This document shows, piece after piece, positions 9,251 through 54,574 of a stretch of DNA of 64,000 nucleotides (its first letter is position 1; the number at the start of each line of letters is the position of its first letter). Origin of the DNA: Oikopleura dioica (lineage: Eukaryota > Animalia > Chordata); assembly GCA_907165135.1 (NCBI GenBank), contig OU015567.1, forward strand, positions 3,038,001-3,102,000, given 5' to 3'. The position numbers and the translations under genes are program-made. The notes beneath the pieces were generated by a model that was given only the letters and a program-made list of their open reading frames with translations, had not been told where the DNA came from and did not search any database.

Positions 9251-10356
9251 TGAAGATATTGGCTCCCCAATTCTTGGCGGTACGAACCCTTGCTTTGAGA
9301 ATTTTCGCCTTCACGCCCTTATAAGCTTAGTTTTGTGTGTTAAAAAAAGCAAAGCTTCGAGTTATTTTCGAGCAACACGTAAAGATAATTGCATATAAAA
9401 GAATCAACAAACGATGCGACTTTTATTAATCAAGTTTTGATTTGATTAGGCGAATTTATTTTCAAAACTAGAAACAGCTTTTATCCAGATTCTCGATGTG
9501 CTGATTTCCTGCAAACTCACACCGTGCCTCTGATTCTACAATAAAACAATCAATCGAGTTAATTAAATTCAGTTTGACTAATCTAAAAATTAAAATTCTT
9601 TGCTTTCTTTAATTGCCAATAGCAGAAATTCCCTCAAAACTTTGCGAAGTCAATTGCTAGAGAAAAATTTTCGTCCTTGATTTCGAGAAATCACCAGATG
9701 CTTCCGAGGACTCATGCAAAGACTTCTGATTTCCATAATTTCTGCGCCTACAAAGAGTTTGGAACAAATTGAAATAGATTTTTTTTCACGATTTCAAGAT
9801 AACGATTATTGCATTTTGAGTTTTCCTTGAATTTATTATTTAGAAAATAAATATATAATGAACTTTCCAACGAATAGTAAGATATCACAGATTGAATATT
9901 GAATATCTTTTTTTATCACAATAAGAAGAAAAAGGGTTGAATAAGCTCGTAAGATGCGATGAATGATTAGTTTTGTTTCTAAAGGGTTAAATAGAAGTAC
10001 GGCAATTGGTTTCAAAGTACGAAGGTAGGTAGTACGGTCAGAAAATAGAAAGTAGAAAAGTAGGTAAAAGGAAGACTGTATTTTACATAAAACATACAAA
10101 CAATCGTTCAGATTTTAAGGGATTTCGGATTGAGCGCTGGTGAATAAATACACAGAGAGAAATAGTTAGTAAAATACGAGAAAGTTAGAAACCTTTTGAA
10201 AGAAATTTCAGTAAGTGTGATTTGGAATTCGATAGGTGGGGGGTAGAATGAATTGCGGATTTGTAGGGTGCAGCTTTATTCGACGCGAAAAAAGTCTTGT
10301 TGGTCCTATTTCTGGCTCTAGAAAGTGTCTTTCGGGAGATGATAGAGTCTTTAATG

Positions 10357-10633
10357 GAGAGAAGCGATTTTCTGGCAGTTAGACTTTCTGGCAAAGGCGA
10401 TTTTCTGGCACTGCCAGAAAATCTAATATGCCAGAAAATCTTATTTCCAGAAAATCGCCTCTTTTGATTTTGAATCTACAGTTAGTGATCCTGGAAGGTA
10501 AAAAACGGAGAGGGTTTTCGACAGTACCACCAATTTTTTCTTACACGTTATTTTTAAAAATTCATTGACAAAAGCCACTTTTTACCCATTTATTACTGCC
10601 AGAAAATCTAACTGCCAGAAAATCGCCTCTCTC
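10357..10633. mobile_element. 277-bp Mutator-like MITE
   Basis: TIR GAGAGA(A/G)GCGATTTTCTGGCAGTTAGA(C/T)TTTCTGGCA matches at 35/37. A 9-bp TSD TCTTTAATG lies at 10348-10356 and 10634-10642, with internal TGCCAGAAAA subterminal repeats. Confidence 0.88.
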
Positions 10634-13600
10634 TCTTTAATGACCTTATAAGACACTAAGTTAGTAAGTTTCTTTCCCTGAACGAAATTTTCTAGAGCCA
10701 GTTCCTGTGAGAGGCGTCTATGAGGTTGGGTTAGCAAGGACCAATCTTTAATCAGTCCACGAAGCTGTTTGATGACTGTATCTTGCATCTTTTGCTTCTT
10801 GCGTTTGTTGATGTTCAAGCTGGCAAGCATGTTTTTGCTCTTCTTGTCTTGCCGCAGTTTTTCCATCACTAAAATCATCGTTAATCAAGGCCATTATACT
10901 AAGAATTTACCTTTGAGAGCAGTACCAGGATTGACAAGCGCATATTTGCTCGTTTCTTGGCCATATTCTTGAAAGTACGTTTCCCAGTCCCATTCAGTGA
11001 ACAAATCGACCATTTGCCACGTCTCTCCAAGAATTCCTTCGAGTGTTTCTCGCATATTTCCCGTCATAAATTGCGAAGCATTGGCGATCTGGCCGAGGCA
11101 AAAGAGGACATCGAGCGAGAGCTGGTGCAGAGCGCCCATGTTGATCATCGCGATTTGGTCGTCGATGAGTTTTTCGAGGAGCGAGAAGCCTTTCAGGGTT
11201 CCAAAAAGTTGCCTTTGAAAAAGCTTTAGATTCTATTGCTTAGAATGAGAGACAGCATGAACCCTTCCTATATGCTGATATGTCGCAAAAATCGCCTCGG
11301 AAATCAACTGATCCGACATTTTCAGCACCCTCAGTTTCTCAAACGTCTCATCGAGAAACTGGAAGGTTTCTTTGAGATAACCACTCGTTGTTCCTGTTGC
11401 TTCTTTCATCGACCAGTCGAATGGGCGATCAAGGAGAGCGTCGAGCTTGTCGTTTAGGCGAGGATTAATTCCATTTTCGGCGAGGCGGCGAAGGTCCTGG
11501 AAGAGCTGAGCGCCGAGCTCTCTCATTCTGCGGCGGGCCTTCTTTTTCCCTTAAAAAAGATAGATAAGAGACAAATTTTCTTGTAAAACCTGATGTTTTT
11601 CTATCTCCATGGTCGAGCTCCTTGATATACGTCTCGATATCCTTGACAGATTTTTCCATATGAGTCAGATTCGTCACGAATTGAAGCATTTCTTCGAGCG
11701 TGAGACTTTCGTCCATGATTTTCTTTTCCAGAGCGACCCGAAGATTACGTTGAAGAAGGGATTCAACAGACTTAGCAAGGGCGACATCAACGCAGACATC
11801 AATCAACTCGACATCGATGCAGTAGATGTGCGCTTCGTCGATGAAATTGACCAGGATTTCGTGGATCCGTAGTACAGAACTAAACAAAAGTGAGGAGTTC
11901 ATATATATAATTAGATGCTAGATAAGAAAGGACGTTCTATTGAATATTCAAAAAGATACTGCTTTTGGTTCTTACCTTGAAAACGGTAATTTCTTCGGAT
12001 ATCTATCCCCTAATTTCTTCAACAATTTCTGGCCATATTTGAAGAACTTTTGCTCCTCAACAGAGCTAGCCACCATCATTGGCACGAGACGATCTTTGTT
12101 GATTGCAGCGGAAAACTCTGAGCCAAAGAATTTCAGGAGCCCTTCTACATACTGTCTCCACATTTCAGGAATGACTGCGTTGAGGTCGGACACACCAGCG
12201 TGAAAGCCATAAGAAGCCAGGGCATCGCTGAAAGCGACTAGGAGCGAATATTAGCAAAATCAATGTGCAATTATATGTTCATATATATTTTTTTATCTAT
12301 CAAATCAATTTCGCAGAAAACCGTATTGAAAGAACGTGTAGTGATATGAGTCAAGTTTCATTTCATTTTCAGTATTATCGAAAGAATCATATGTTCATGG
12401 AAAATTTCGCTAAGCGTGCAAGAAAAATAATAAATAAACGCCATAGTGCATCATTTAATTTTTATCGAGAAAAATGTTATGAAACTCGGATGAAAGAAAG
12501 CTTTATAAGAGAAAAAAAGCGCCATCTAAATGAAAAAGGTGCGGCTGGATCTAACCTGTGAGTTCTTTTGAATCAATCAGCTCCTTGCAATCTACCGAGT
12601 AGGCCAGCTGCGCGCGTAGGAGCATAAGGACTCTACTGACTGCCGTAGTCAACAATCTGCCGAGCCATTCTCGATCGATAAGCAGTTCTTTCGTGGAATG
12701 TAGCAGAACATCTTCGATGGCGAAGAATCCCAAAATCTGATGAAGAAATCGCCGGTAAATCTGAGCAAAGTGTCGTATATCTTTTGGCAGAGTGAATAAC
12801 AGCCTCGCTTGATGCTCTCTTTCAGCCCTGTAGCTCTCGATAAACTCGCTTTTTCCGCCAAGAAGCGAGTGGATATGAAGACTTTTGTGTATCGGCGTAA
12901 AATCGACAAAATCAGAAACATCTCTGTCCAAGTCCCATTCCCATCGAGGCGCCGCCGATTCAGCCATCGACATCATTTCGCTGAATTCATCGTCGGTGGC
13001 GATCTCGTCTTCTTCTGAAAATGGGTTGATCGCGTGTGAAGGGCGGCGGGAATGGGAGTAGTAGGAGCTACGATCGACTTCTGGGAGATCGTCTTCGTCG
13101 CCGAAAGGGTTTCCGTTTGCCGACGCTTCATCCCCTTAAAAATAATAACTCAGGTCAACTTAGTGGAACTTTACCTGAAAAAGGATTGCCTCCTCGGCTT
13201 TCATTGTCAGAAAAAGGGTTGCCATCGTCGGAGAATGGATTCTCAGACCTTCCAGATCGTCCGCTTTCCGAATAATCGTCATTTCCAAATGGGTTCATTT
13301 GCGAAGAAGTGGTTCGATTCAAGGATCCATTCATGAGTCGTGCATCTTTAGCCGATTCGGTTAAACTGTGTTTTGAACTGTATACTTTCATCATCTTTTT
13401 TGGAGGTGGTGCTTTTTCAAAGGTCAAAATTTGAGTCAAAAATGACCTATTTTATGTCTTTAGTGAACAGGTATTTTGACCATTTCCTACAGAAGGTACA
13501 ATTGAGGCAGCTGGCATTCGTTTTGGTTGTGAAGGATTATTGGGTCTTCGTTTTTGCAAGTACTTTTGCAAAATAACCGTCCCCACTTTCGGGGCGTTGA

Positions 13601-27503: not shown

Positions 27504-28730
27504 CCAAACACTCGCCAGCACCGGATCTCGCTAGCACTTTTCACTCGCCTGCACTTTCCTCGAAAGAAAGTGCAGGAGAGTTTTTGGTGCAGATGAGAGT
27601 CGGTGCAGGAGAGTCTTTCACTTTGCGTGGGCGGTGGAAAATATTTTTTTTTATAATTTACAATACTTGAAATTTTAAAATTTGTTTATATCAAATTTTG
27701 ATAAATTACAGTAATTCGGAAAAGTAAATAAAGAAACCAGTAATGCATAAATAATTTCTTTATTTAGTTTCTTCTCGAGAAGCTGATTTTTTGCTCAAAA
27801 ATATCCAGTCTCGTAGACTCAAACAAAAATTACTTCTATTTTTCTGAATAATTTATTGATTATTTACCGTTTCTTTGTAAAAATATCATTTTTATGTATA
27901 AAATTGTACACAAAAATAAATATGAGGAAAATTCATACCTTTCCTCACCCTTTATCCGCAGTCTTAGCATTTATTTATTCTAAATATGAGTAACAAAAAG
28001 TTCTACCAAAATCAGGTTGAGAAAATTTTCTCACTAATAAATATATTCAATAAGTTCGCCCGCCCACGCAAAGTTAAAAACTCTCCTGCACCGACTCTCA
28101 TCTGCACCAAAAACTCTTCTGCGGGTGCGCGTCTTTTCTGGCATTTTTGAGAAATGCGTCTTTTCTGGCATCGCGTTCTTTCTGGCAGTCGCGTCTTTTC
28201 TGGCACTGGAGTCTGATTCATTTTACTCTGATATTGAGTAGGGTCTACCAAATCTAATAAGCTGATATGAATAGCATAAAACCTTTACCTTCAATAGCAA
28301 CTTGCCACAGGCAAAACTTTTTTATTTGATTTATAAGTTTTTATCATCAAAGAAAATAGTGCTGATCATTTACATAATTTAAAAGATTTTCAGCATTTAT
28401 TATGATGATCTAATAATTCTTTATTCGATTCTAGTGCCAAGAAATTGGTCCCCTCAATCATATTCAAAACTACGGGTTCTTCTTCTTGAAGAAAATTTAA
28501 GAAGGAAATAACAGTTGATTAGATTTGGTAGACCCTACTTGATTTTAGAATTCAATGAATCAGACTTCAATGCCAGAAAAGACGCGACTGCCAGAAAGAA
28601 CGCGATGCCAGAAAAGACGCATTTCCCAAAAATGCCAGAAAAAACGCGCACCCCTCTTCTGCACTTTCTTGCTAAGAAAGCGCAGGTGAGTGAAAAGTGC
28701 TAGCGAGATCTGGTGCTAGCGAGTGTCTGG
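27504..28730. mobile_element. Foldback element with ~130-bp TIRs (middle layer); right TIR split by a younger insertion
   Basis: 27504-27633 is the reverse complement (with mismatches) of 28060-28122 joined to 28663-28730. The interior is AT-rich. No TSD was identified. Confidence 0.8.
28123..28653. mobile_element. 531-bp Mutator-like MITE (innermost layer)
   Basis: ~140-bp TIRs start GGGTGCGCGTCTTTTCTGGCA. 9-bp TSD CTCTTCTGC at 28114-28122 and 28654-28662. TGCCAGAAA repeats are shared with the MITE at 10357. Confidence 0.9.
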
Positions 28731-45366: not shown

Positions 45367-47753
45367 TTATTCGAGCAAAATACATAATAATGACATAAGA
45401 AATGAACTGAATAAAGGAAAGGCGCCACTCCGAGTTCCTATCTCAGCATTTTCAAGTGTTTCAGTCTCTGGGCTGATGGTTGGAGCTTTACTGTCTTCTA
45501 TGATTTCGTTTTCGAATTCTTCTTCCATATTATTCAGGCCAATAAGCGTATCGTCGATGCTTTTCCAAGTTTCTTTATACTTTAGCTTATAATGAAATAA
45601 GCAAATCAAAACTCTTTCCTGTCTCCAATGTTAATAACCCCATTTGTCTCATTCATTTTGTTACCCATTTCTTCTTCATCTTGGCTTATTTTAACTGCCT
45701 TTGGTCTGATGCAAATCGCCATATGGGGAGCAGTACACCATTCATCATCCCAAAGGCCAAGTCCTCCAGCATTCTAGAGCTTAAGAACAGATCTTTCTTA
45801 CTAGAGGACTTACCAGAACAATGCAGTTTTGACCGACGCCTTGAAGTTGCCGATTATCAGGAACGCTTATTCAGGATCATTTTTTGTAAAGGACAATGCT
45901 TCTAATATAATTTTATCCCGATGCCCAGGAGCCCAGTTCAAAAAATTAACTGGAGAAGCAAATTCGTTCGCGTCCGAAACCCACCGACCGTTTTTCTTCT
46001 TGGTATCGACCCAAATTGTTTCTTCTGACTCGGTGAACTTTGATTCTGGCGCCAGCCTCCCGATTCGTTTTGAATCTCCAACAGAATTTATTCTTGGGAA
46101 ATGGCCTTGAAGATCACTACAAATTGTTTTCGAGGCTTTGTAGGGAGCTTTCTACAGGGTCAAAATGGTTTTCCTCTTTGATTGCAAAGTATTTAACGTA
46201 AACAATTTTGAGCCATTGGCATGTGGAATCACAATAAAGCACTCATCGTCATTGTAATCTTCAAAGGGTGGCTGGCACTTCGACTCGAACTTTGAATCTT
46301 CCAGATTATCCATATTGAAAAGCAATTCATTTTCTCTCTGCTCTTCGAACCAATTCGGTCTCCCAGGAACTGGACATTGTTCATTCCTGACGCAGATTTC
46401 GTTCCTGTCGCATTTTCGAGTTTGGCAGAAAGAATATCGCTCGCGGATGCAAAAATCGTCGTCCATCTTTCCCGGCTGGCCTCGGATGTTGACGAGCATG
46501 CAGTTTTGGAAGTATTCATTTCGGTTTTTATCATCTTTTAATTTTTAAGGGACCACGCGAACCTAGCTCGCGCCGCTTTTCAAAAAATCCATTCAGTACC
46601 TTATTTTTTGTCAAACTGAATGAAATTTTCAGGAAATATGTGGCTTTTTCTCCTCTTTAATCTCCAGTTTGAATTGTTTTCATATGATAATTTTTGAATC
46701 CAGCAGGAAGAAAACGAGATGCACAACTTTAAAAGGCATCAGCTCCTAAAATACTTGTCACTTGAAGTTACAAATACCTTCATCGAAAAGCGCATTCAAT
46801 TCTGATCAGAGATACGATCGCGTGGTCTTCAAATTTTATTTGCATTAGATCGTAATGAGGGGATTTATCAAGGAACACCCTTCGCGCGGCGGGGAATTTG
46901 CACTATTCGCGCTAAATTGGCGCGCTTCACGCCGCGAAACACCGGCTTCACGCGGAGTTACTGGACTAATCCGCTGGTTTTGACCGGATGTAAATAAAAT
47001 TTGAAGACCACGCGACCGTATCTCTGATCAGAATTGAATGCGCTTTTCGATGAAGGTATTTGTAACTTCAAGTGACAAGTATTTTAGGAGCTGATGCCTT
47101 TTAAAGTTGAGCATCTCGTTTTCTTCCTGCTTAATTCAAAAATAATCATATGAAAATAATTCAAACTGGAGATGAAAGAGGAGAAAAAGCCACATATGTC
47201 CTGAAAATTTCATTCAGTTTGACAAAAAATAAGGTACTGAATGGATTTTTTGAAAAGCGGCGCGAGCTAGGTTCGCGTGGTCCCTTAATGTCAAAAACCC
47301 CGTTTTTATCTTACACCAAACAGCATTATCCGGCAACAATTCGCCATCCCATTCTCCCCAATTATCCAGCTCTAGTTCATTTCCCCATGCATCAATCCAT
47401 ACTCCTTCCTTTTCCCTGTCCGTGTACCCCAGCCAGATCTTCTCATATAAGCCGGGCCCTTTCAGGGGAGAAGTAAGAGCTAACTTCTCCAGCGGAAATG
47501 CCTCCTGGCGACTGAATGTCGGCAAATTCGACTCCAAGCACGAGCATAACTTTGCCGCCTGATCAAAAGTCATTGGCGGGATCAAGCGGAAACACGAGCC
47601 GTAAGCCAAATCAGAAGTCTCTCCTCGCGATAGATCGAAAAACCCATCTGGGCAGTTGCTCGCGGACGATCGTAAATTCTGACTCTCGCTTTTGTAAATC
47701 TCTAGGTTCAGCAAAGGCGGTATGGAAAAATTTGTTTGATTTGCGATGCTCAT
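45367..47753 (-). CDS. Tandem C-type lectin domain protein with a C-terminal GPI-type hydrophobic signal
   Basis: CTLD1: CPDGF...SCFRLI...AAKLC...IWLGYTDREKEGVW...NW / NCMLV...MDDDFC...FC. CTLD2: CQPPF...ECF...IWVD...NWAPGVPDN...QNCIVL/NAGGLGLWDDEWCTAPHMAIC. Tail: SGAFPLFSSFLMSLLCILLE-stop. The start was not located. Confidence 0.85.
46549..47284. mobile_element. 736-bp foldback MITE with TTAA TSD (Kolobok/T2-type ends) in a lectin intron
   Basis: ~295-bp near-identical TIRs begin GGGACCACGCGAACC. TTAA at 46545-46548 and 47285-47288. The purine-purine termini differ from piggyBac CCC termini. Confidence 0.9.
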
Positions 47754-48999: not shown

Positions 49000-51900
49000 A
49001 CGAGACTGGAACAACTCGAAGCTGAAGCTAATTATCGAAAGAATGATTAATTTAAGTTTCTCCGTTGGCGCTCACGCTCAGACGGAGGATCTCATTACTG
49101 ATTACTGCGAATGCAACAGGTAAAAAGGCTGCAATTGCCAATTGCGGTGAGTTTGCAAGTTCTTGACTTTCAGAGTTGAAAATCGAGCCGAAGCGAAATA
49201 TTTCGATTTGAGTGAAGAGTCTTCCTTGATTTCAGATTCCAGGTATTAGAGGAAACAGAAATCGCACCCAAGTAGGAAATTTTGGAGACTTACTTTTTAT
49301 TTAGCAGCCTCCCACTCGACCTTTTCTCGAACTTCGATATGCAGGTAAACACTTTAACCCCTTTTTTTCTCTGAATCGATAGCATCCCGAATCGACGAAA
49401 GCTTCGGGTCAATTTCAAAAGCATCTTTTTGAATCGAGAAATAATTTGCTTTAAGAACTTGGATCCAGGGATGCTTGACATTATTGATGCCCAACTTGAA
49501 ATTGCAGCGGGAAATCGAAGCGTTTCGAAGCTGGTGAAAGTCAGTGTTCAAGGCTTTGCGCTGATTTTTGGAAGTGTTGCGAATATATTGGTGATCGCGA
49601 CCATTTTGGTAAGTCATTCTTGTCATTCTACCAAAAATGGGTTCTTTGAAAGACAAAATAAACTTCTTTTTTCTTAGAAACAACGACGAACAATACCTCC
49701 TTCATCAATTTTCATCATCAACCTTGCGATTGCCGATTTGCTCCTACTCTTTCATTTACCAATAACGATGGATATGACGCTGAATGACAACGCCTTCCGA
49801 TTTGGCCTGGGTTCACAGTTGATCGAGTTTTGTGATCGAGAATGTTTTTGAACCCAGGTTAGAAAAACGGTTTGTTTGATGGACGTTGCTTTCAAAACGA
49901 CGGTCATGCACTTGACAGTGTTTTTGCTGTGCATGATGGCGTTGGATAGATATATCAAAATTGGATACAATAGTTTTGAGATCAAAAGCTCGAAGAAAAA
50001 GTACATGGCAATTACTGCATTTCTTTGGGAAAGGATCGACTAGAGTCGTATTCTTTAGATTTTTGTTATTTTAGCGATCCTTCAAGAGCTTTTATCGTTT
50101 TGCTTCGCGATTCCAAACATAACTCTTTTCGAGCACGATGAAGCGCGCCAATTATGTAATGTCAACTGGGCCAGCGAGCCGGACGACAAAATCGTCGCTT
50201 TGAAAAATACCGATTTGAAACACATCGAGGAAAATCTTCGTCGAAACTGCTCGGAAAAAGAAATCGAAGAATGCGATTTTGGAGCAGTAGAAATTGATCT
50301 GTCTGAGCGAGTTTGTCAAGTTTATCCGCTGAAGTTTAGGACTTATGTTATTTTCGCTTTTTCTTCAGGATGAATTACCATAAGAATTTTTTGGTCAAAA
50401 AATTTTTTTCTTAGATAAGGGGATATTCTGAAAGCCCGTAAAAAATTAGACCGATTTTCAAAATTCTAGTGCCCGATGACGTCATTATGACGTCATAAGG
50501 GGCTTTTGAAAAAATTTCATTTTTGACCGTTTTTGAGCCGGAAAACGACGGTCGATCCCTTTTTTCTTTTGTGGATCTTGTAGCTCAGGACCTGAGCTTT
50601 ACTTACCCGGGGTCAAAAAATTCTAGAGGTCACGTGTTATTACGTAATTGGAGGCCCCAAACTTGGTATTATCTTATATTGTTAATTTAACTGTATAAAA
50701 TGTTTATAGTGTTTATATTTTTTAGTAAATATTTATCACATGACCAAAAATGACTCATAACAGTCATCCGGAGGACCTCTATACTGGAGGAAAATTGCCG
50801 GAAGACTTCTTTAAAAAGTCTCGATTTCACTTTTTTTTTTAATTTGAATCTTCTCAGCCCATAATTCGGACATTTTCTTGGGTTTTCTGGGTTTCTATTT
50901 AGTTTTTGCATCATTTTTCAATAATTTTTTGAGAAAATCTATTTTTTGAAATAAATTCTTCCAGCATCTTTCTTCCAGTAGAGAGGTCCTCCGGATGACT
51001 GTTATGAGTCATTTTTGGTCATGTGATAAATATTTACTAAAAAATATAAACACTATAAACATTTTATACAGTTAAATTAACAATATAAGATAATACCAAG
51101 TTTGGGGCCTCCAATTACGTAATAACACGTGACCTCTAGAATTTTTTGACCCCGGGTAAGTAAAGCTCAGGTCCTGAGCTACAAGATCCACAAAAGAAAA
51201 AAGGGATCGACCGTCGTTTTCCGGCTCAAAAACGGTCAAAAATGAAATTTTTTCAAAAGCCCCTTATGACGTCATAATGACGTCATCGGGCACTAGAATT
51301 TTGGAAATCAGTCTATTTTTTACGGGCTTTCAGGATATCCCCTTATCTAAGAAAAAATTTTTTTGACCAAAAAATTCTTATGGTAATTCATCTCAGGTAA
51401 AAATTTAATTTGAAAAAGCCATTCAGGCCTTTTAGGTTTTCTACTGCCTGGTTTGATAATCTCCCTAAGCTACCTGAAACTGTGGCAATCAGTAAAAAAC
51501 GTGCGACACAATTTGCGCGACCTCTCCTCCGCCTCATCAAGCTCCGACCTTGGAAATCTCTTGATCCTCCTTCAACTTTCCTACATAATTTGTTGGTTCC
51601 CTTCCCAGTTATTTCATGTGCTTAGGAGTTTTGATTTGCTGCAAGACTTTCATTGCGAGTCGGCTGAAAGATGGCTCCAGCTATTGGCGTGGATCAATCC
51701 GGTTTTGAATCCGCTGCTGTATTGCTTTTTTGGGACGAGATTTCGGCATGATTTCAAAGGAAAGAGTTATCAATGATTTAAGCGTCCTATAAGCTCTTCC
51801 AACCGGTAGTGCGATTAATGAAGGTTTTATTATATTATCACTTAATTAGTAATCTAAAATTTCATATTTGTCGAACTCAATCGATAGTTATGGTTTTTGA

Positions 51901-52144
51901 ATGCTTCGGCTTGGGTCCTGTCCGCGATCCCAGACTTAGCTCAAGAAATGCCTTTTCCCTTGCCTCAAGAACAACTGGCACCAGAAGTTATAACACTCAA
52001 CGGAGCTTTACTACAGTGAGTAACGGCTGCTCTACTTTCAATAATACTATTTTAAAGACAACGAGCATAAAGAATAGCCAAAGGTGCTCGATCTCGTCAT
52101 TTTCCCAGGAAGACCATTCTGTCATCAAAAATGTAAATATCTGA
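49000..52144 (+). CDS. Class A (rhodopsin-like) peptide GPCR, somatostatin/opioid/apelin-like; 5' exon not located
   Basis: TM1: GSVANILVI. TM2: IFIINLAIADLL. TM3: VCLMD...FLLCMMALDRY. TM4: W/LLSFCFAIP. Long ECL2. TM5: YVIFAFSS/GFLLPGLIISLSY. TM6: YIICWFP. TM7: NPVLNPLLYCFFGTRFR. Ser/Thr-rich tail. Confidence 0.9.
50369..51392. mobile_element. 1024-bp foldback element with 4-bp TSD TCAG at the GPCR TM5 exon/intron junction
   Basis: ~420-bp arms (50369-~50790 vs ~50973-51392) begin GATGAATTACCATAAG. TCAG at 50365-50368 and 51393-51396. Each arm carries tandem TGACGTCA sites and CACGTG. Confidence 0.92.
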
Positions 52145-52283
52145 CTTACACTGTAATAAACAAAATTACAATATAACAAATGAAGATCTTTTTATCCGGA
52201 TCAAAATAATGAAACATTGAAACATTTATTTTATGGAAAGGTATAGAAATATAAACAGAAATAATCAACATCTAGGTTTGTTT

Positions 52284-54574
52284 CTACTTGAAGACATGAC
52301 GAGGTATCTGAACATTTTGATGACGGTATATTATTTGTAACAATTCTACCTTTGGTTCCAAAGACGCTTTTAGTCGTTCGCCAAGACTTCCTTTCTGCTT
52401 GATCAACTGAATGACACCCATGACGGGGATGCAAATCATGGAAGAAAGCGCCAAACACCAGCCAAGTCCTTCCGCCCAAAGAGGAAGAACTTCTTGGTTT
52501 TCGTACTTCATTCGTTCATACTTCGTCAGGCAGAGGGCGAAAATGGATGTTGTTGCAAGCGGAGTCAAGAACTTCCAGCAGTAGACGAAATAGCGCGAGC
52601 ATTTTTTACCTAGGTTCAAATTTATCATCTCCTTTTGCCTGAAAACTAACCAGTCATTCGTTCAACAGTTTGCAAGTACTTTTCGCCTCCATATCCCCAG
52701 CCGATCGCCACTGCTTCCCAAAACGACAGCCAGAGCAAAGCGAATCCAGATGCTCCAAAGTTGTCGAATATTTGAAAGGTATGAACTCCTCCTTTGGTGC
52801 AGAAAATCAAGCCGATCAGGAAGAAGCAGATTGTGACAAGAAGGGAGAATTTAGCACGGTGTCTCTAGAGTTATTTCTCAAGGATGGATTCATTTTTGGG
52901 TTAATTCACCTGTAGAGTTGGAGAAAGATCAGAAACAGCAGTGAGAAAACTCTCCATTCCTACCATTTGGCTTCCGGTTCCAAGAACAAGGATCATCGTA
53001 AAGAAAGCCACTGCCCAAACAGGACTGTGCGGCATCATCGTGATTCCCTTCGGATAGACCAAAAACGCCAAACCAGGGCCACTTGTCGCTACGTGCTCGA
53101 TGTCAATTCCACTCTCGCAGGACATGAAACCCAAGAAGGCGAAAACCGCGAAGCCGGCGAAGACTGAAGTGCCAGAGTTGACAAGAGAAAGGAGGATGGC
53201 ATCGCGGTAGCAGTTATTGTCGAACTTATTGTATGAACCGAGAGCTGTCAAAGCGCCAAGACCAATTGCATAGGAGAAGAAAATTTGAGTACCAGCGTCG
53301 ATCCAGATCTTAAAACTCTGTCAAAGATAAGTTTTTCAAAATCAAAATCACCTTCGTTGTCAATAATTTGCTCCAATCAGGCTTCAAGTAAAACGAAATT
53401 CCCTCGGCGGCACCTGGCAGCGTAATTGCCCGAATAAAAAGCGCCGATAGAATGATGTAAGGGTAGATGGCAGTGACCCAGGCTACTTTTCCGCTGCTCT
53501 TGACTCCTTTGCTCACGCTGAGCCAGCAAGTCAGCCAGGCAAAAGCCAAACAAGCGACTAGCTCCCAGCGCATTTCGCCTTGATCTTCGATGCGGTCGGT
53601 TTTCTGGAGCACACGATTCTCCCAAAAGTCTTGGACGGGTGTTCGAATGGCTAGAAATTCCGAAAGTTGTCGCTCGTCGAATGGTTCCGCGCAAATTCCT
53701 GGACATTTTTTGAAAACAAGGATGAGAATCTTTTTTTACCTGTATCATTCTCGAATAATCCACGCGAGGTTGTATGAGAGAAGCAGGTTGATTGATTGGA
53801 CCATGTATTGTCGCAAGTCTCCCAGGGAAGATCTGATGCCGTAAATGAGTTCACCAAGTAGAAGATCGCCCACGCGAGTACCATAATGTAGTAGATGTTG
53901 CAAAAACACACGCAAACGGCCGAACTGACGCCGATTCCTCGAAAGAGTGGGACAAGATCCCAGGCTCGGATTCCACCAGCTACAAATATTGATTGAATCA
54001 GAGCGCTCAATTTGGTATTTTACCTTTCATGAATTGCCCAAGCGAAAGTTCCAGAAAGAAGATCGGAATTCCACCAAAAACGCACATGATCAAATAAGGG
54101 ATGAAAAATGCGCCACCTCCATTTTTATAGCAAAGATAGGGGAAGCGCCAGACATTTCCCAAGCCAACTGCGAACGCGATGACCGCCAGAATGAATTCGG
54201 CTTTTCTCGACCATGTCTAAATTTCTCGTTAGAAGAATGTGATAAGATGCAAAAACAACGATTTATGAGGTCGATGAGAGGGGCGAGAGGTTGAAAATTA
54301 CTCTACTTCAGTGACGTTGTATTACTGTAATGAGGAATTCTCCTAGAGAATATGTTTTTTTTACCTGTCTGTTTGGAACTAAATCTTCGCAGTCTTCAAG
54401 CTTCTTCTGAAGAAGTCCTTCTGTCGATGTGATTCCATCGCTATCAATAAGTTTTAGGCACAAAATTCTCTACCTTACTGATGTCGCTTACGTAATCTGC
54501 GTGGAACTTCCAGAGCCAGATTCGTCCGAGCTGTTTCTCTTTTTTTCTGTTTCTGCTGTGTTGATCAGATCCAT
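52284..54574 (-). CDS. SLC6 sodium/chloride-dependent transporter, creatine transporter (SLC6A8)-like
   Basis: Motifs: [95 protein letters not shown]. The GQFMK and TM3 [11 protein letters not shown] signatures resemble vertebrate creatine transporter. ATG at 54574. Confidence 0.93.

Follow-up and report, generated by a model that had tools for sequence, protein, structure and literature searches.

A polymorphic foldback transposon on a 5' splice site within an Oikopleura dioica receptor gene, probably a young loss-of-function insertion

In the 64,000-nt stretch of Oikopleura dioica DNA analysed here (the window), an apparently low-copy, non-autonomous foldback transposon has recently inserted into the TCAG with which exon 4 of a GPCR gene ends. 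The site is polymorphic, being filled in the assembled individual and cleanly empty in another sampled one. We favour, with moderate confidence, the reading that the filled site is a young, segregating insertion allele which has probably lost its function.

Results

The gene hit by the insertion, at 49471-52144 on the plus strand (Table 1), encodes a rhodopsin-family GPCR of 429 aa in a model of seven exons, whose translation is open once spliced. The Pfam profile 7tm_1 is matched by exon 2 (E = 1.3e-05), exon 3 (3.1e-06) and exon 5 (5.7e-11; profile positions 162-260), and the DRY, CWxP, NPxxY and P5.50/Y5.58 motifs are all present in the spliced product. Joining 50368 to 51436 yields YVIFAFSS/GFLLPG (YVIFAFSS/GFLLPGLIISLSY) and brings back the conserved FxxP(x7)Y of TM5. 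This join is collinear with a Tara Oceans homologue (scaffold P0001/L039, 441-872), which is intronless at that point and shares 39% identity with the spliced GPCR product (BLASTP). As this homologue encodes TM5 without an intron there, the TM5 intron of the window gene is lineage-specific. When compared with exons 4 and 5 of the window, the homologue was instead seen to have its intron within TM7, behind NPV. It is the closest homologue found: exon 5, used as query in an exhaustive HMMER search, yielded no close relative, and this Tara Oceans fragment was the best match (48% identity over the matched stretches). An Rfam search of 49300-52300 gave no match.

Table 1. Window positions of the features of the receptor gene and of the inserted element.
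Feature	Position	Strand	Remarks
Exon 1	49471-49608	+	GPCR gene model
Exon 2	49678-49809 or -49817	+	GPCR gene model; 7tm_1 match
Exon 3	49858 or 49863-50028	+	GPCR gene model; 7tm_1 match
Intron 3	50029-50058	+	30 nt, donor TGG/GAAAGG
Exon 4	50059-50368	+	TM4, long ECL2, first half of TM5; ends ...TTTTCTTCAG
Left TSD copy, TCAG	50365-50368		last 4 nt of exon 4; single TCAG in the empty-site contig of X2
Foldback DNA transposon, non-autonomous, long-TIR	50369-51392		left arm 50369-50817, loop 50818-50943, right arm 50944-51392
Hypothetical GA donor, CAG/GATGAA	50369-50374	+	if unused, frame GGA TGA, immediate stop
Two adjacent TGACGTCA palindromes (ATGACGTCATTATGACGTCAT), CRE-like	50476-50496, mirrored 51266-51286		one pair per arm
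Right TSD copy, TCAG	51393-51396		its AG adjoins the original GT donor, giving a possible recursive AG/GT
Intron 4, original, intact	51397-51435	+	39-nt GT-AG, GTAAAA...TTTTAG; ends CCTTTTAG, then exon 5 GTTTTC
Exon 5	51436-51759	+	TM5 (second half) to TM7, helix 8; 7tm_1 match
Exon 6	51888-52015	+	GPCR gene model
Exon 7	52058-52144	+	GPCR gene model

The reads used for comparison were three raw oligo-dT RNA runs (X12-X14) and a DNA run (X2), the latter from another sample of the same study as the probable source of the window. All 18 listed exonic differences between the window and the X2 allele are synonymous under the gene model, each being located at a third codon position. This restriction to synonymous changes backs the reading frame of exons 1-5 as well as the joining of 50368 to 51436, and thereby the gene model, and it shows that the GPCR gene is functional in the population and under purifying selection, a result which bears on the gene and not on the time since insertion. 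The synonymous sites 50310 and 51500 read A and C, respectively, in the window allele and T in both cases in the empty X2 allele. Taken as a pair, the two alleles combine very high allelic diversity with strict protein conservation. Introns 2 and 4 are strongly diverged between them (49471-51759), and the intronic differences gather within intron 2.

The inserted element measures 1024 nt (50369-51392). Its arms (element bases 1-449 and 576-1024) are reverse complements with 96.9% identity over 450 columns, the central ~320 nt being almost perfectly matched, and enclose a loop of 126 nt. The element starts with GATGAATTACC and ends with GGTAATTCATC (in short form GATGAATTACCATAAG and CTTATGGTAATTCATC). 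Long arms, a short loop, a TSD, an empty site elsewhere and several copies with the same termini mark it as a long-TIR non-autonomous transposon, here with a TSD of 4 bp. The ORFs of the element gave no Pfam match and have no relatives in the protein collections. Its RNA is predicted to fold into a near-perfect hairpin of ~450 bp (-794 kcal/mol), the stem of which begins at the exon-element border. The TGACGTCA palindromes in the arms may represent putative subterminal binding sites. A few reads in all three RNA runs share 90-95% identity with the ~40-nt TGACGTCA motif only (50460-50501, 51261-51302) and have unlike flanks; as these reads leave the motif into unlike sequence, it follows that transcribed loci elsewhere share this motif.

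When the element and one TCAG are taken out, the sequence reads TTCTTCAG/GTAAAA...CCTTTTAG/GTTTTC, with a 39-nt GT-AG intron (51397-51435). In the window allele the end of exon 4 is followed by the original GT donor only after 1028 nt, and the duplicated TCAG puts an AG right before GTAAAA (51395-51402; TCAG/GTAAAA from 51393), an arrangement which has, as a sequence only, the form of a recursive splice site.

The empty site is found in a 300-nt contig of X2 with single-copy depth (44.8), which holds 50251-50369, 36 other letters and then 51427-51571. It reads TTCTTCAG/GTAAAATCAGG...GCCTTTTAG (i.e., ...TTCTTCAG/GTAAAATCAGGAAGAAAGCCATTCCGGCACTTAATTAGCCTTTTAG/exon 5) and thus contains one TCAG and no element, followed by a diverged 46-nt GT-AG intron in the place of intron 4. 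None of the X2 contigs connects exon 4 to the foldback element. The empty site fixes the TSD at 4 bp, excludes an excision footprint and indicates that the insertion is young and polymorphic. The arms, the pair of TCAG copies and the empty site confirm what a preliminary description of this DNA had read from it, namely a foldback element that has a 4-bp TSD and falls exactly on the 5' splice site of a GPCR gene. Likewise, its restored 39-nt GT-AG intron in TM5 with the join YVIFAFSS/GFLLPG is upheld by the collinear Tara Oceans homologue, its placement of the true GT donor 1028 nt downstream, with an AG directly in front of GTAAAA, proved correct, and the empty-site allele in another individual which it had envisaged exists in X2, with a single TCAG.

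X2 also contains other copies of the element. The similarity of its contigs to the element stops exactly at 50369 (eight contigs) and at 51392 (three contigs), with unlike flanks, and as the copies end at exactly these two positions the family is real. Summed X2 depth amounts to 740-1029 at the termini, ~100-260 inside the element and ~45-80 in the gene and its flanks, so that terminal depth is 10-20 times flank depth; as far as depth, which does not equal copy number, can tell, this suggests a low-copy family with few full-length copies and roughly twenty elements that share the terminal ~40 nt. Regarded as consensus strings only, the eight X2 flanks before 50369 end ...CAACAATA, with an agreement of 0.46. 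On the far side of 51392, AAAG opens the flank in three contigs and TCTATG in one. These consensus strings give no sign of a TCAG or CAG/G target rule, and the CAG/G target bias that had been suggested beforehand finds no support in the consensus before 50369, which does not end in CAG or TCAG. No second copy of the element is present within the 64-kb window. A metagenome scan with a 24-nt terminus gave no match. A scan with an 18-nt terminus gave 38 single matches, which were rejected as chance because the similarity ends by ~25 nt; two of the contigs concerned are human-gut metagenome assemblies.

The window contains further repeats. An unrelated 736-nt foldback element at 46549-47284, which begins GGGACCACGCG, has arms of ~335 nt that are 93% alike and is flanked by the TSD TTAA (46545-46548 and 47285-47288) in the style of piggyBac. 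It sits within a former ~40-nt GT-AG intron of a minus-strand C-type lectin gene, an intron which now spans 780 nt (from 47314 to 46535); the upstream exon of this gene matches positions 2-71 of the Lectin_C profile. Nested inverted repeats with tandem GCGTCTTTTCTGGCA-type motifs, apparently intergenic, occupy 27504-28730, and a 44-nt inverted repeat at 10350-10640 has a TTTCTGGCA motif in common with them. Both regions probably belong to another MITE family.

Donors were scored by their in-register pairing with the canonical U1 5' end, counting Watson-Crick (WC) and G-U pairs. The original donor CAG/GTAAAA forms seven WC pairs and the GAAAG donors of the GPCR gene form five to six pairs. The donor provided by the element, CAG/GAUGAA, forms four WC pairs and one G-U pair, with the wobble as the only pairing beyond +1, and has neither an A at +3 nor a G at +5. 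GA-AG introns outnumber GC-AG introns in O. dioica and have AG/GA followed by A at +3 as their context (PMC7072748), and in the Okinawa assembly of this species 11% of the introns are non-canonical (11-12%), with a median intron length of 49 bp (PMC8008620). When held against an O. dioica-type GA-AG intron (AG/GA, A at +3, RNA support), CAG/GATGAA has the exonic AG but, with a T at +3, does not conform to this type.

An exhaustive enumeration of frame-keeping donor-acceptor pairs yielded no GT option for intron 3 (50029-50058), for which TGG/GAAAGG...TTTAG reads best. At 51760, the GA donor (AAG/GAAAGA) could be exchanged, in frame, for a GT at 51766. Hence, of the two G/GAAAG donors that the gene had been thought to need, the one at 50029 does need GA, whereas the one at 51760 can be replaced by a GT. 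Judged by its reading frame, the GPCR gene needs at least one GA-AG intron, which fits the published figures for O. dioica (PMC8008620, PMC7072748); that the host uses such introns, as was assumed from the beginning, is thus supported both by intron 3 of this gene and by these two papers. A reading of intron 2 as a GG-AG intron (49810-49857) was set aside, since the frame-keeping GT-AG options 49818-49862 and 49827-49862 exist. All frame-keeping options of intron 2 (49810-49862) have weak donors (CTG/GGTTCA, ACA/GTTGAT and CGA/GTTTTG; three WC pairs to U1), and with A instead of G at 49827 the X2 allele lacks the GT of CGA/GTTTTG. A donor census across the window from ORF geometry was too noisy for use.

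Discussion

The strong donor CAG/GTAAAA and the 39-nt intron behind it are untouched by the insertion. As both are intact, the spliceosome would most likely still remove the short intron and keep the element. Removal of the 39-nt intron alone would leave the element in the mRNA, where the frame would stop two codons in (GGA TGA), yielding either an unstable transcript or a receptor cut short in TM5. The insertion allele would accordingly be loss-of-function or strongly hypomorphic, and selection would have yet to purge it. A scarless removal from the first GA of the element to an AG is possible on paper and may happen at some level. Several observations speak against retention of the element: intron 3 of the same gene needs GA-AG, the genome tolerates non-GT donors, and the predicted hairpin would cut the effective distance between donor and acceptor to ~43 nt, which is near the normal intron size. 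Moreover, the weakness of a donor is no bar to its use, because both frame-keeping options of intron 2 have donors with three WC pairs.

It appears rather unlikely, although worth weighing, that splicing neutralises the element, with the GA of its first two bases serving as 5' splice site and the wild-type mRNA being restored. Such splicing could run in one step to the AG at 51435, which would make a GA-AG intron of 1067 nt, or to the TSD AG at 51396 first, which would regenerate CAG/GTAAAA for a recursive second step, or the 39-nt intron could leave first and the element afterwards. All three routes would give the wild-type mRNA on paper, and the preliminary description was right in this respect for a cut from the first GA of the element to the AG at 51396 or 51435. 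The idea gains from the GA-AG intron 3 in the same gene and the frequency of such introns in O. dioica (PMC7072748), from the exonic CAG directly upstream of the element's GA, from the similarity of the TSD acceptor TTCATCTCAG/G to other acceptors of the gene and from the foldback hairpin, which would draw the two ends of the element together. It can also point to the transposon-derived non-canonical introns of Fritillaria borealis and to introners with an AG supplied by the TSD (PMC11282704). Yet the donor has four WC pairs and lacks the A at +3 and the G at +5, a far stronger GT donor with seven WC pairs competes for the same acceptor, and the predicted stem would take in the final base of the exon, the donor and whatever branch point might serve the acceptor at 51396. 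The empty allele of X2 fits a young insertion that selection has not filtered, and none of the GPCR exons is covered by a read from the three oligo-dT RNA runs, of each of which 1.5-1.8 Gb were read. In its general form, the idea would be that the hairpin and permissive G*-AG splicing together make O. dioica foldbacks harmless, so that a 1-kb insertion would act as an intron of ~45 nt; we regard this as unlikely. The accompanying proposal, to be doubted to the same extent, is that the first GA of the element would be paired with an AG of either the duplicated target or the resident intron, whether at once or by recursion via AG/GT; the site would then exemplify, live and polymorphic, how a transposon turns into an intron, or part of one, in a chordate.

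It is much less probable still that the family is introner-like, that is, that a CAG/G or NNAG target lets the TSD supply the 3' AG and that new introns arise in this way genome-wide. The TSD of the window copy, TCAG, and the AAAG at the start of the consensus of three X2 contigs behind 51392 would suit such a target, but the X2 flanks (...CAACAATA, TCTATG), which are consensus strings only, have no bias towards CAG or TCAG. Depth points to few full-length copies and ~20 termini rather than to hundreds, the window is devoid of a second copy, and the copy it holds lies at an existing intron, where no new intron position is gained. The earlier suggestion of an intron-generating family is not supported, as depth suggests few full-length copies and the element would here only lengthen an intron that already exists. 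Similarly improbable is a main effect through long dsRNA, in which the 450-bp hairpin would be cut or edited (Dicer- or ADAR-type) and the allele silenced, and in which the hairpin might feed small RNAs directed against the foldback family. The near-perfect hairpin predicted at -794 kcal/mol would provide a suitable substrate, but expression of the GPCR gene was undetected in the RNA runs sampled, and such silencing would overlap with the loss-of-function reading instead of excluding it. An assembly artefact, for example a foldback chimera of long reads, might be suspected from the palindromic structure and from the filled site being seen only in the window's own assembly. It can nevertheless be rejected as highly improbable, because the 4-bp TSD is clean and because independent contigs of the family in X2, derived from short reads, hold the element including its loop at ~97-99% identity and with ends exactly at 50369 and 51392. 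The reading that remains preferred is that of a young insertion allele from which the short intron would be spliced and in which the element would be kept.

Introners are introns derived from DNA transposons and are described, in the accounts drawn on here, for Micromonas, Aureococcus and others (Huff et al., 2016; Gozashti et al., 2022; PMC11282704). The window element resembles them in its build, being non-autonomous and having TIRs and a short TSD. Its end would furnish one splice site and the TSD the AG, and taking out the element together with one TSD copy would, on paper, leave no scar. However, introners measure ~100-200 nt, whereas the window element has 1 kb with 450-nt arms, a low apparent copy number and a non-canonical, context-poor GA donor, and it lies at an existing intron border, so that no new intron position arises. 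By its sequence it would have the anatomy of an introner, while it is removal at the RNA level and many intron-coincident copies that define introners. That permissive splicing buffers against insertions is an established idea (PMC11282704, PMC13326754). The closest parallel in a larvacean are the MITE-derived non-canonical introns of Fritillaria borealis (Henriet et al., 2019, as reported in PMC11282704 and PMC13326754), with which the present case shares a permissive major spliceosome, TIRs and TSDs, and the idea of neutralisation by splicing. These reports describe the introns of Fritillaria as numerous, RNA-proven and for the most part AG-AC or AG-AT, whereas here a single GA...AG candidate is found in another genus. 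With the GA-AG introns of O. dioica itself, of which the gene provides a 30-nt example, the candidate shares the GA at +1/+2, the exonic AG before it and an ordinary acceptor AG. Those introns have an A at +3 (GAAAG in the two donors of this gene), in contrast to the GATGAA of the element (PMC7072748). Furthermore, typical O. dioica introns have ~49 nt and the element-derived candidate would have 1067 nt.

Recursive splice sites (ratchet points) occur in long introns of Drosophila and vertebrates. Like these, the juxtaposed AG/GT at 51395-51398 would give back a donor site once a first step is completed; unlike these, it consists of a TSD beside an old donor and is known here from sequence alone. 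In maize, Ds and dSpm elements are, as reportedly shown with cDNA by Wessler and colleagues, partly spliced from exons, which leads to leaky alleles. The window allele is likewise a young DNA-transposon insertion in which the ends of the element could act as splice sites, whereas in maize the splice sites lie inside the element and splicing is usually imprecise. As to foldback elements of the FB type, nearly the whole of the window element also consists of two long inverted arms and a short loop, and it is non-coding and multi-copy. The TSD of the Drosophila FB transposon is 9 bp, whereas that of the window element is 4 bp, and the arms of the latter are free of tandem subrepeats.

If the element is retained in the mRNA, the site amounts to a commonplace young insertion that deprives a fast-evolving receptor gene of its function, and its use would be limited to marking recent transposon activity in the strain. 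If it is spliced precisely, the birth of a transposon-derived intron sequence could be watched within a chordate population, with filled and empty alleles side by side and their transcripts told apart by the linked synonymous SNPs, and this would help to explain the many GA-AG introns which O. dioica has kept.
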